Origin: Chara braunii
Lineage: Eukaryota; Plantae; Charophyceae
Assembly (NCBI GenBank): GCA_003427395.1
Contig: BFEA01000018.1
Coordinates: 1,183,382 to 1,247,381, forward strand
DNA: 64,000 nt
Direction of reading: 5' to 3'
The notes beneath the pieces were generated by a model. That model had not been told where the DNA came from. It saw only the letters and a list, made by a program, of their open reading frames with translations, and made no database searches. The position numbers and the translations under genes were made by a program. Of the stretch, positions 4,451 through 63,940 are shown one piece after another (the first letter of the stretch is position 1; every line of letters begins with the position of its first letter).

Positions 4451-5128
4451 CTAGGATCTCTTGCGGCAAGTTTCAGGGACAGTTGTGCAAGATAGTAGGG
4501 GCGGGGCGCATCTGGATTTTATGCCTTCGGAAGTGAAGTTACCATCCCCGCGAGGTTCCGCGATAGGGCCGGGTTCGGATTTGATGAACCGGTGGAAGCT
4601 ATGGGGGTCGCGCTGCCTGAACAGCTGCTGGCGTCGCTCATGGCAAGCCTCGGAATCCGACGAGGCCGACCTGAAACGGAGGTTGTGTGCTCGCTGCTCG
4701 ACCTCGGTCTGGGTTCGTCGAATAAATCCAGCGGCTCGGTACTCGATGTCTTGCTGGCACTTGGAGCACGAGGTTCGGGGCTAGTAAGGGGCGATCGTGT
4801 GCCAAGGGACGGCAGTCAGGCAATGAAAAGGCAATACGAGGTGATAGGGAGGGAAGTCCGTTTCAAGGATGAGGATACCAGGTTCGACGATGACGTCGGT
4901 TACGTATGAGCTGGGGAATTGGGAGGGAAATGGGATTGCACTTAAGGCCCGTTCAATGTCCCATTCACAGACCCGTTCGTCCCCTGTCCGATAGGGAAAT
5001 TTGGGAGGATTGGGTCCGGGTCGTGCGAGAAGGCGCTTTCTCCCACTCCCAGTGCTCCCGGAATCGTCGGTGCCTCAGAGTCTCAGACTTTCTCGATCCG
5101 TGATATGAAACGGAATTTCATTATCCAT
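4451..5128 (-). pseudogene. LTR-encoded ORF, copy A1 (unknown protein)
   Basis: MDNEIPFHITDRESLR...PKFPYRTGDERVCEWDIERAL...EPGILILETDFPPYHLVLPFHCL...PRTSCSKC...YRAAGFIRRTQTEVEQRAHNLRFRSASSDSEACHERRQQLFRQRD. Has a frameshift and an internal stop. Confidence 0.75.
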
Positions 5129-6301
5129 ATCGTCGTAAATTTCTTCATGGGTTCTGGAAGCAGGTCTTGCAGACACGCGTGTGAGCAACGTCCTTCTCGG
5201 TCACGCTTACACGTGTGTGCACAAGATCGCGCTCTCACTCGGATGGACACGGATCAGATGGCTATTTTCGGACGGGACAGTCATGCATCGAATCGAATGT
5301 TCGCTCCTCGGTCGAGACATACATCCATCGAGACGACAAACTTTCCCATCAGACTTGTCCATACGACCTCAAAAGAAAATGGGAATGAGAAATCAACATG
5401 TACTCATGCATTAAATCCATCCATTTACAAGGAGAACAACATGCATTCCCATTAAGCCAAAGGCCTCACAAAGATCTAACGCAAGCGCCCGAGGGGCCGA
5501 TACGCCCAAATTCTCAATAAGGAGGAGGAAATGAGAGAGAACAGATCGGGTGTATGTCTGCAGTCGCGCGGGTAAGCGGCGACCCTCAGGGTCGAACTTT
5601 CTCGGGTGGGCACACGATTGATCATACGATTTCCTAGAGAAGAGGGAAAATGGGGGCGAGAAGTCGGCAAGTACACATACATCACGCCGCTTCAGCCAAA
5701 CGAATCTTTCATTCACATCATCATAGCCCATAGTGCACAGAAGTCATACTCAGCCGATCATCGTACTCANTCCGACAAGTCACAGAGAAACAGAGACTCG
5801 GATGGAAAATCAAATCATTCGTCGTTCACCAAGAAGAAGGAAAGCAAGAGATAGCCGCGAGCAAAAAGATGGTTGGCGCCAATTGTCAAAATGACATAGA
5901 TGAGGGGAGAAAAGACACCATCCCAACACATCCTCTCTCTCTCTCTCTCTCTCTCTCTCTCTCTCTCTCTCTCTCTCTCTCTCTCTCTNNNNNNNNNNNN
6001 NNNNNNNNNNNNNNNNNNNNNNNNNNNNNNNNNNNNNNNNNNNNNNNNNNNNNNNNNNNNNNNNNNNNNNNNNNNNNNNNNNNNNNNNNNNNNNNNNNNN
6101 NNNNNNNNNNNNNNNNNNNNNNNNNNNNNNNNNNNNNNNNNNNNNNNNNNNNNNNNNNNNNNNNNNNNNNNNNNNNNNNNNNNNNNNNNNNNNNNNNNNN
6201 NNNNNNNNNNNNNNNNNNNNNNNNNNNNNNNNNNNNNNNNNNNNNNNNNNNNNNNNNNNNNNNNNNNNNNNNNNNNNNNNNNNNNNNNNNNNNNNNNNNN
6301 N

Positions 6302-6383
6302 ACATAGTGGCGATCCAACTAAATATCTTGATTCCAGTTGGCACCGCTATAATCATGGTTGCTGCGGTGAAATAAGCTCGGGT
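6302..6383 (-). pseudogene. cox1: Mitochondrial cox1 fragment (NUMT or chimeric contig end)
   Basis: Translates as [27 protein letters not shown], the highly conserved COX1 segment. It abuts an N-gap and is not seen in the homologous LTR at 44261-47014. Confidence 0.9.
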
Positions 6384-61410: not shown

Positions 61411-61500
61411 AGAGAGATTGCCGTGCGGGCTAATCCGCAGAGAGAGATTGCCGTGCGGGCTAATTCGCAGAGAGAGATTGCCGTGCGGGCTAATCCGCAA
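61411..61500. repeat. 3 x 30-bp tandem repeat with internal hairpin
   Basis: AGAGAGATTGCCGTGCGGGCTAATCCGCAG x3. Confidence 0.9.
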
Positions 61501-61553
61501 CGTTGCCTGTGCGGTAGGGAGGGTAGCCGTAGTAAAAAACGTGTTTAAACCCT

Positions 61554-63940
61554 TGTGATGCGCAACCTCACGCCCTTGTGCTGTCTTCCGTTCGGAGTGT
61601 TAGCTGTGCGGAAAAGAGGCCCAGAAAAACAGCAAGATGGGGTGTGCCAAGGATTTTTGAAAATTGAGTGTGGGGACACAGACGGAACTGAAATCCCCCG
61701 TGTTGGTCCGATGGAGCAAGTCGATCGTTCGCGCGCCGCGGAACGCGTGTGCGGACGCGGCGCAAAAACAGAAAGATTCAAATTCAATCCAAAAAGTACT
61801 GTCGAGCATCCCACCGAGCTACAGTCCGTCGTTTAGAATGGAAAGGCTCTGGCACGCTTCGCGTGTCTCATTTTCGTACCAGATCTCGTCTTCGTTCGCT
61901 GGTCAGTTCCGAATCCGACGTGGATGGTCTCAGCCGAGTGACTCTTTCCTTATGCTCGTCCTCACTCCGTATTCGGTAGTGGAAGCCCTACGCTTCGTAG
62001 TGATCAAAACACTCACATTCGGTGCACAAAGTGCGCGGCCAGTGGGGTTCTACTGCCGTCCACGGAATGACGATTAACTCGTTAAATGGCAACAATACCT
62101 AGTAAGGTGGGAAGTGCGTATCGATAATAACAAACCCGACTTCTACGAACCCAGAACAGCGGTTGGCCGGAGGAAAGTGATACTGCTCGCCGATTTGTGC
62201 AACGGCTTCTCGTACGTCCCACTCACATACACGTGTCCTTTCCTCACTGTAAGGAAAAGGTCGCGTTGGGATGGGAGATACGGAGGCTGGCGCACAATCG
62301 AAGGGTACTTGTCAGTCATCATGTCAATCAATCACAAAATATCCGGAGACGTCATTAAGAACAAAAGCGATTGCGTGTCCCCCAGTCAATTTTTTTTTTG
62401 ACACAAGAGAGAGGGAGAGCAAACACAGATCAGCTTGATCACGCACATGGCTACGGGTCCGATCAGTTCAACACAACGTTGGTCCCTGGGCGCCTTGTTT
62501 CTCAGGGCCGCCTCGTGGTTCGGCTGCTGATGTCGTGTAGCATAAGGCAGATAACATGCGTAGTGCAAACAGAGCTACAAATCCAAACACTCTTGCATTC
62601 TCTAACAAAATCTCGACGACACTCGTCTTATCAATTTGGAAAAGTCACGCATCTCTATACATGCATTTACTATGGAAGGTGCGAAAATGCACAGGAAAAG
62701 ATAACAATCCACAACAAGGGCGTATTCGCCGTTAATTCCAATATGGCCCTGGGCCAATCAACTCAACGTCGATCCTCGTATCCGCATCGACGATCCCGAC
62801 CGTCGCGTGCTAACTTTCACCACTGCGATCGTCACCCCGCTGTCGTAAACTCGACATGGTTCACCCAGATCCCACAGTCCGTCGTGGCGATCCAGCGCGC
62901 AACCGGCCAGTCTATCGTCAGCCGGAGAGGACTTTCCAACTCGCTTCAAACACTCTGCCTAGCCACTGCTTCCCGGAAGCTGGCTCGAGAGTTGAGAACG
63001 TAAGAGAGATTTGCGGACGCGCTTGCGGGTTTTATAGTTGCGACAAGGGAGATAGAAGGGGGAGAAGGCGACAGGAAAGCTGAGATGTAAGAGGAGAAGA
63101 AGGAGGAGAAGACTTTGAGAAGAGTGCTCTATGAACGCCATGCTGATCCCTCGGAACTCAAGGTTCAACCAATCAGGTTCGTCGCGCGATAGGAAGGTCC
63201 TATCGATCCACGCACCTGATTGGTGAGCGGGAGTTATCGGGCGATCGACCGGGCGTCGTACGCCAGACTTAGAGGGTGAGAAGAGAAAAGGTGCGAGAGG
63301 TGGTGCAAGACGGGTCCAAGATTCAGATGATCAAGAAAGGGAAATGGGCGCGCGTAAGCAAGGCGGGAGAGAGAGAGGGAAAAGGAAAAACAGTTACGGG
63401 GAGAGAGAAAAAGGAGGGAGAAGGGAAGGGAGGCGCGGGAGGGAGTGATGCGGGGGATAGAGAGGAGGAAGCTTTTGCATGCACGGCGCCGTCAACAAAA
63501 AAAGAAAAAGGCCCCGAAACAGTTACAGCTTGCTTCTATCCTAATTCAAAATTGAAATCACCATATCCGCGCGCGAAAGAGCGACGCAAAAAAATAAAAG
63601 TCCTACGTTTATTCATATCCGAACGAAATTCCGACAGTTTTCTCCGACGCGATCAAGAACATTCACACACTCGGAAAGGACACGTCGAAGTTCCGCTTAT
63701 CCCGGAATTCCCAACCGCTGGGCCCAATTCCCAGTGTGCTCGCTAAGGCGCACGCAAATCCCCACGTATTTCCCGACTTTGCAAAAAGAAAAACAGAACT
63801 CAGCAGTCGAAAAAGCTCTCCAAAAAGGGAAAATGCGGCACCCGAAAGCAAGAAATCAAAAACGGGGTTTTCATGGGGTTGGTAAAAAGCAAAAGAAAGG
63901 GTACGAAAAGTGGCACGGGGTCGTGAAGTGGTTCGTCACA
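61554..63940 (-). mobile_element. Solo LTR, family B (2387 bp), 4-bp TSD CCCT
   Basis: CCCT|TGTGATGCGC...GTTCGTCACA|CCCT. Colinear with 12819-15518. Confidence 0.93.
61790..62322 (-). pseudogene. LTR-encoded ORF, copy B2
   Basis: RPFPYSEERTRVCEWDVREAV...GFVIIDTHFPPY*VLLPFNELIVIPWTAVEPHWPRTLCTEC...GFHYRIRSEDEHKERVTRLRPSTSDSELTSERRRDLVRK*D. The stops are TAG/TGA, consistent with C-to-T changes. Confidence 0.75.

Follow-up and report, generated by a model that had tools for sequence, protein, structure and literature searches.

Are the long terminal repeats (LTRs) of a retrotransposon, normally treated as purely regulatory DNA, able to carry a protein-coding gene? The question is raised by a stretch of 64,000 nucleotides from the charophyte alga Chara braunii (contig BFEA01000018.1 of assembly GCA_003427395.1, positions 1,183,382 to 1,247,381 of the forward strand; hereafter the window), in which LTRs of two families of Ty3/Gypsy elements, A and B, contain related open reading frames (ORFs). 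A first-pass annotation, made from the letters alone, had proposed that five of these LTRs encode one selected protein, translated ahead of gag. The analysis described below favors, with a probability of about 0.7, an accessory protein gene of a Chara-specific Ty3/Gypsy group that lies wholly inside the LTR, most likely in a long leader formed by R and U5 (the repeated and 5'-unique LTR regions).

The five stretches do represent a single protein family, with tblastn E values among the window copies ranging from 1e-16 to 1e-76. With the intact copy at 13575-13051 (B1) as the query, tblastn against the window recovered the other B copy (B2, 62272-61796) at 71% identity (E 2e-76) and the A-family regions 5059-4592 (A1; 38%, E 4e-30), 44974-44537 (A2; 39%, E 4e-26) and 12344-12789 (A3; 35-39%, E 3e-16), as well as a sixth, decayed remnant at 38781-38686 (E 0.002). 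In an all-versus-all blastp comparison of every six-frame piece of the window, protein matches between families A and B were confined to the claimed frame. The impression that the DNA of the two families is hard to align while the protein is kept was also borne out: blastn found no A-B match over the ORF among the window copies, and the tblastn matches between families had E values of 4e-30 to 3e-16.

The copies differ in their state of preservation. A1 (4454-5128, minus strand), located within the 5' LTR of a Gypsy element, has 225 codons with 2 in-frame stops; A2 (44543-45067, minus) is interrupted by 1 stop and, near codon 177, by a frameshift, its tail to 44401 being in another frame; and A3 (12227-12790, plus), which has 1 stop and 1 frameshift, lies in an A-type LTR split by the insertion of B1. 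In B1 (13051-13575, minus), the frame is uninterrupted across the family region, but the stop typical of the family is missing, and the frame extends as far as 12601. B2 (61787-62322, minus) does begin at 62322, as originally proposed, but its frame changes after about 14 codons, the remainder being read from 62311, and it contains 3 stops. The remnant (38686-38781, minus) belongs to a third element, C, where it is flanked by the primer binding site (PBS; 38388-38376) on one side and by the body of the LTR on the other. The stops seen in single copies are point mutations. There are no assembly gaps inside the ORF copies; the gap at 5989-6301 falls between the TATA box and the ORF of A1, so that the TATA-to-ORF distance and the LTR length of A1 are estimates only, and the gap at 15786-16580 is outside the B1 LTR.

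The ORF lies wholly inside the LTR and not in the internal region, because it is found in solo LTRs with target duplications and in both LTRs of full-length elements, and because 5' LTRs that carry it are followed by the PBS and gag. LTRs of both families start with TGTGACGAAC and end with GAGGTTG[GC]GC[GA]TCACA; they are 2.4-2.9 kb long, with the termini TGTGACG...CGTCACA and 4-bp target duplications. Within the LTR, the ORF spans approximately positions 1950-2480; 120-230 nucleotides separate its end from the LTR end and the PBS, a location that agrees with the first reading. Three of the window LTRs are solo LTRs, all on the minus strand: A2 (44261-47014; TGTGACG...GGGCGTCACA), which sits within a tandem repeat and has the target duplication GCGC/ACGC (3/4 match); B1 (12819-15518; TATGACG...GCGCGTCACA), with the perfect 4-bp duplication GTCC; and B2 (61554-63940), with the perfect 4-bp duplication AGGG. 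The insertion of B1 separates the two halves of the A-type LTR of A3 (plus strand; up to 12818 and 15519-15721). The A1 5' LTR (4333-7239, minus) starts with TGTGACGAAC at 7239, is interrupted by the gap at 5989-6301 and a COX1-like fragment at 6303-6395, and is directly followed by a PBS resembling initiator-Met tRNA (4320-4332, minus; TGGTATCGGAGTC), then by gag (3566-4270, minus; Pfam Retrotrans_gag) and pol (2888-1). A1 and the remnant C are both 5' LTRs, each followed by the initiator-Met-like PBS TGGTATCGGAG[TC]C and then gag. The PBS consensus TGG[TC]ATCGGAG[CT]C adjoins the LTR in seven elements, and PBS and gag are found downstream of the LTR in A1, C, and the elements at the loci L004, L005, L006, L008, and L009 of the same genome.

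Full-length B elements at such loci consist of an LTR, the PBS, gag with a CCHC motif, protease, reverse transcriptase, RNase H, a PHD finger, integrase, an uncharacterized region of ∼2.5 kb, and the second LTR; the Pfam order Retrotrans_gag, zf-CCHC, aspartyl protease, RVT_1, RT_RNaseH, rve is the same in the window, L004, L005, and L008. The element at L008, flanked by the target duplication AGAA, has one ORF copy in each LTR (8276-8806 and 19735-20265), so the gene is found in 5', 3', and solo LTRs alike; a divergent copy is also present in L003. Within L008, L005, and L009, the two LTRs share 94-95% identity, versus 72-76% between elements. The pol proteins of families A and B are 55-66% identical, making the two, as had been suggested, diverged Gypsy sister families.

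Selection on the encoded protein, the central claim of the first-pass annotation, is clear. In Nei-Gojobori counts, the ratio of nonsynonymous to synonymous substitution rates (dN/dS) between elements is 0.04-0.34, far from a value near 1; third codon positions differ 2-3 times as often as first and second positions; and the nonsynonymous share of the differences is 0.33-0.47, compared to the neutral expectation of 0.77 (p 1e-10 to 1e-16). Between families A and B, synonymous sites are saturated, with proportions of differing synonymous (pS) and nonsynonymous (pN) sites of ∼0.8 and ∼0.4, respectively. Family B copies share the start MWTDK and a stop after FLD and are free of indels except for a 2-codon gap in B1 and the frameshift in B2. 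In whole-LTR alignments, three-base substitution periodicity is significant only in the ORF windows. It is absent from an equally conserved block in the 5' part of the LTR and from a 210-amino-acid antisense ORF (62371-63003), both of which were rejected as coding for that reason. LTR pairs within one element, on the other hand, show 8 synonymous and 26 nonsynonymous changes when pooled (pS 0.0295, pN 0.0293; omega 1.0), and since such pairs have diverged only after insertion, each copy evidently decays neutrally once it is inserted. Constraint in the active lineage combined with neutrality in every inserted copy is what characterizes a transposon gene. With selection restricted to the lineages from which active elements descend, the protein would serve the life cycle of the element itself.

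The encoded proteins, of roughly 20 kDa, comprise 173-181 amino acids in family B and about 225 in family A. They combine an acidic core (isoelectric point about 5) with a strongly basic C-terminal tail (isoelectric point 10.4-12) and have no membrane segment. Three Cys residues, one in the CEWD motif and two in the CxxC motif, are conserved in all intact members. However, there is no fourth Cys or His ligand conserved between the families and no zinc finger match in Pfam; metal binding, which had been suggested from these residues, is a candidate property only. The product is weakly predicted to be a soluble nuclear or nucleic-acid-binding helper. As the first reading had anticipated, no known domain could be recognized: Pfam searches with E values up to 10 gave only chance-level matches, and neither a PDB profile search nor an ESM Atlas search gave any.

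Relatives of the protein are few. P0001 and P0005 are encoded on small contigs of the NCBI assembly GCA_003427375.1, and P0002 is a 175-amino-acid open frame, 51% identical, on a metagenome contig from ENA. P0003 is a C. braunii gene model of 1077 amino acids on BFEA01000018.1, in which the ORF corresponds to residues 427-577, fused to the DCP1 gene. The model covers 78 kb (L004:10001-88218), joins the LTR ORF and other repeat-derived exons to this decapping gene, and is probably an annotation chimera; the LTR ORF thus explains chimeric gene models of this kind. Among 1.84 billion representative proteins, a profile search revealed no other believable relative; the only hits left over, the repeat proteins P0004 and P0006, were discarded as spurious (many weak repeats, hhalign probability 6.6%). 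A word-based search with an A-type piece and a metagenome scan with P0002 gave no match. Among the matches of a search with gag were twelve proteins named Chara braunii. Judging from these searches, the family appears to be an orphan one, so far limited to Chara and the one metagenome contig. Of the genomic copies examined, only four (B1 and those encoding P0001, P0002, and P0005) are fully open through the family region, and the copy behind P0003 stops ∼8 codons early.

The placement of the gene relative to the transcription start depends on a conserved TATA-like box. CTATAAA, at 14638-14644 (minus strand) in B1, is the sole TATAAA of that LTR, and its minus-strand equivalents are found at 6503-6509, 46294-46300, and 63031-63037. 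There is usually one TATAAA per LTR, 716-940 nucleotides from the LTR start (A1 and A2 each have a second one, and the 5' LTR of L005 has none), and its context, CTATAAATT[CT][CT]GC, is conserved between the families. The upstream box reported earlier is present, and its distance to the ORF start is 1.0-1.35 kb, within the range of ∼0.7-1.4 kb given before. As the single conserved TATA box lies ∼1 kb upstream of the ORF, it is plausible from the sequence that the genomic RNA begins with a very long R/U5 leader that includes the ORF and precedes gag. The proposal of an R/U5-encoded protein agrees with the conserved box, whereas the leader makes its translation by plain scanning unlikely, being 1.0-1.35 kb long and rich in ATGs; the ORF would more likely be reached via splicing, an internal start site, or internal ribosome entry.

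Several observations weigh against a functional protein made from such a leader. The 22-37 ATGs between the TATA box and the ORF disfavor direct translation of the TATA-initiated RNA. At least one stop or frameshift is present in most of the genomic copies examined, and Pfam, PDB, the ESM Atlas, and AlphaFold2 (predicted local distance difference test scores of 43.5 and 43.6 with 6-row and 13-row alignments, respectively) provide no fold or domain support for any biochemical role. The RNA data provide no transcript evidence either. Raw reads of three oligo-dT RNA-seq runs from the same species (X5-X7; 6-13% of each run sampled) were compared with positions 10500-15700 at 85% likeness. The numbers of reads matching this 5.2-kb region were 43, 548, and 73 per run, of which just 20, all from X6, were at least 99% alike; reads occurred in both mate orientations, their depth tracked the DNA copy number, and no clusters of read starts or ends and no joints were seen in the sampled runs. 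In proportion to the reads sampled, family-level matches were ∼7 times as frequent in X6 as in X5 and X7; either element transcription could differ with tissue or condition, or X6 could have a greater carry-over of genomic DNA.

The frequent stops and frameshifts could be taken to mean that the ORF is a passenger without a protein function for the element, either a piece of a host gene that was captured or a cis-acting nucleic-acid sequence whose frame is open by chance, and LTR elements can indeed transduce pieces of host genes (PMC7264820). This is highly improbable, as strong purifying selection is seen, together with codon periodicity and maintained start and stop positions, across families that differ at ∼60% of residues, an excess of changes at third codon positions would not be expected of a cis-acting element, and no believable relative outside these LTRs is found among the 1.84 billion representative proteins.

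A more serious alternative puts the gene in U3 (the 3'-unique region), like MMTV (mouse mammary tumor virus) sag and HIV (human immunodeficiency virus) nef: the RNA would start downstream of the ORF, near the LTR end, and the ORF, located toward the 3' end of the RNA, would be expressed from the copy in the 3' LTR, either by way of a spliced or subgenomic message or from a promoter of its own at the upstream TATA box. LTR promoters are mostly located no more than a few hundred bases from the LTR end, leaving R and U5 short; here the ORF ends just 120-230 nucleotides before the LTR end, and a 1.9-kb ATG-rich leader ahead of gag is awkward. However, a conserved TATA-like box is lacking downstream of the ORF, and the only TATAAA precedes it, its position being similar and its context conserved in both families; no spliced reads were seen, although coverage is too thin for this to count. 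A U3 location is accordingly judged unlikely.

It is also quite unlikely that the gene has its own TATA-less start just before the ATG, in which case any LTR, even a solo one, could give rise to a short mRNA of the gene alone. Such an mRNA would have a short leader, avoiding the problem of upstream ATGs, and the 300 nucleotides before the ATG hold several shared features: the motif TGATGACGTC, conserved ∼35 nucleotides upstream of the ATG, ATTGATTGA, which adjoins it, and a (CT)n tract. This microsatellite is located 100-150 nucleotides upstream of the ORF start in most B-family LTRs (13632-13805 and homologous places). Nevertheless, these motifs are consensus resemblances only, no cluster of read starts is found there in the sampled RNA runs, and DNA conservation falls sharply just upstream of the B1 ORF (a depth of 51, versus ∼33,000 in the next bin). 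The R/U5 leader thus remains the favored location of the gene.

The gene is abundant in the genome. Word depth over the ORF, summed over the contigs of one DNA run, is 8,400-33,000, compared to ∼10 over the unique flank, which suggests a number of genomic copies on the order of a thousand, although word depth itself is no copy number. The idea that every solo LTR is a self-contained cassette of promoter and ORF found no support in the two solo LTRs covered by the RNA comparison: they are essentially silent in those samples, as the reads are sparse, occur in both orientations, and form no start or end clusters.

The right ends of the LTRs show an asymmetry for which the standard scheme of reverse transcription does not account. 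In 5' LTRs, GAGGT leads directly into the PBS, whereas 3' and solo LTRs have 9-11 extra bases (TG[CG]GC[GA]TCACA) inside the target duplication; in the window, this 11-nucleotide end block is found at 12819-12829, 44261-44271, 61554-61564, and 15711-15721. An identical 11-mer is located just upstream of the 3' LTR in L007 (18375-18396) and L008 (17540-17562), where, together with the LTR start, it forms the 16-nucleotide palindrome CGTCACA-TA-TGTGACG. The absence of the block from 5' LTRs and its presence both at 3' and solo ends and upstream of the 3' LTR suggest that an internal template serves to restore the right LTR end in every cycle, perhaps via the palindromic junction. A polypurine tract upstream of the 3' LTR is absent in L007 and L008, the preceding sequence, ...CCCTGC[AG]CGTCACATA, not being purine-rich. 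It is conceivable, but doubtful, that the LTR is a complete transcription unit (a promoter, an R region of ∼1.5 kb or more with the gene, and a poly(A) site) and that the ends are formed noncanonically; in that case, the gene would be present at both ends of each genomic RNA, and the solo LTRs, about a thousand of them, could be standalone genes.

Some other features of these elements and of the window deserve mention. The PHD-finger-like segment between RNase H and integrase in pol (window 1021-1728, minus strand; L008:13477-14019) has a weak Pfam match (E 0.005 for the L008 copy). The ∼2.5-kb region between integrase and the 3' LTR (L008:15644-17136; L007:15843-18387) is conserved, with 75-85% identity between elements, and holds ORFs of 202 and 295 amino acids without Pfam matches; it may be a second accessory region. 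A resembling sequence upstream of the 5' LTR of L005 was dismissed as coincidence, the region having no copy there. The 31-amino-acid COX1 fragment within the A1 LTR (6303-6395, minus; Pfam COX1, E 1.2e-6) adjoins the assembly gap and represents either an insertion of mitochondrial DNA or a scaffolding misjoin. The tandem repeat around the A2 solo LTR, with units resembling GCGAGGCGCTGG, flanks it on both sides (44100-44260 and 47015-47075). A 516-amino-acid ORF at 52585-54135 (plus), with weak TPR-repeat matches that all fall under the Pfam cut-offs, is unrelated to the LTR gene.

If the gene is indeed located in R/U5, its leader would be the longest transcribed LTR leader known to us and a test case for the translation of gag behind it. 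In addition, solo LTRs, which are usually dismissed as dead, would become potential gene copies at about a thousand places in a 2-Gb algal genome.

Comparisons can be drawn with several known systems. In the library searched, the literature on LTR-internal ORFs deals mainly with the MMTV superantigen, and none was found on Chara. MMTV sag (the superantigen or "LTR ORF") and nef of HIV and SIV (simian immunodeficiency virus) are retroviral genes located in U3 of the 3' LTR and read from spliced mRNAs. Like them, the Chara gene is an accessory gene in or overlapping the LTR of a reverse-transcribing element, so that every LTR copy carries it; unlike them, it belongs to an algal Ty3/Gypsy element without env and lies downstream of the only conserved TATA box, and no homology to sag or nef was found in Pfam, which includes models of retroviral proteins, or in PDB. 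The non-autonomous Cassandra elements (terminal-repeat retrotransposons in miniature) and retrozymes, which carry in their LTRs a 5S RNA gene and a hammerhead ribozyme, respectively, likewise have a functional gene-like unit that is multiplied with every LTR; in Chara, however, this unit is a protein-coding ORF, and the elements are autonomous ones with gag and pol. The extra ORFs of plant Ty3/Gypsy elements, such as ORF1 of Ogre, the env-like ORFs of Athila and Bagy2, and the antisense ORFs of Grande, RIRE2, and Retand, are all found in the internal region, before gag in some cases and after pol, ahead of the 3' LTR, in others; the LTRs themselves hold none of them (PMC7264820). The Chara gene resembles them in being a conserved ORF of unassigned function that is present in most copies of the family and is conserved to an extent comparable to gag, but differs in lying between the LTR termini, with one copy in each LTR of an element and further copies in solo LTRs. 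The presence of such a selected protein gene within an LTR, unusual for an autonomous retrotransposon, represents a new layout among the accessory genes of retroelements.

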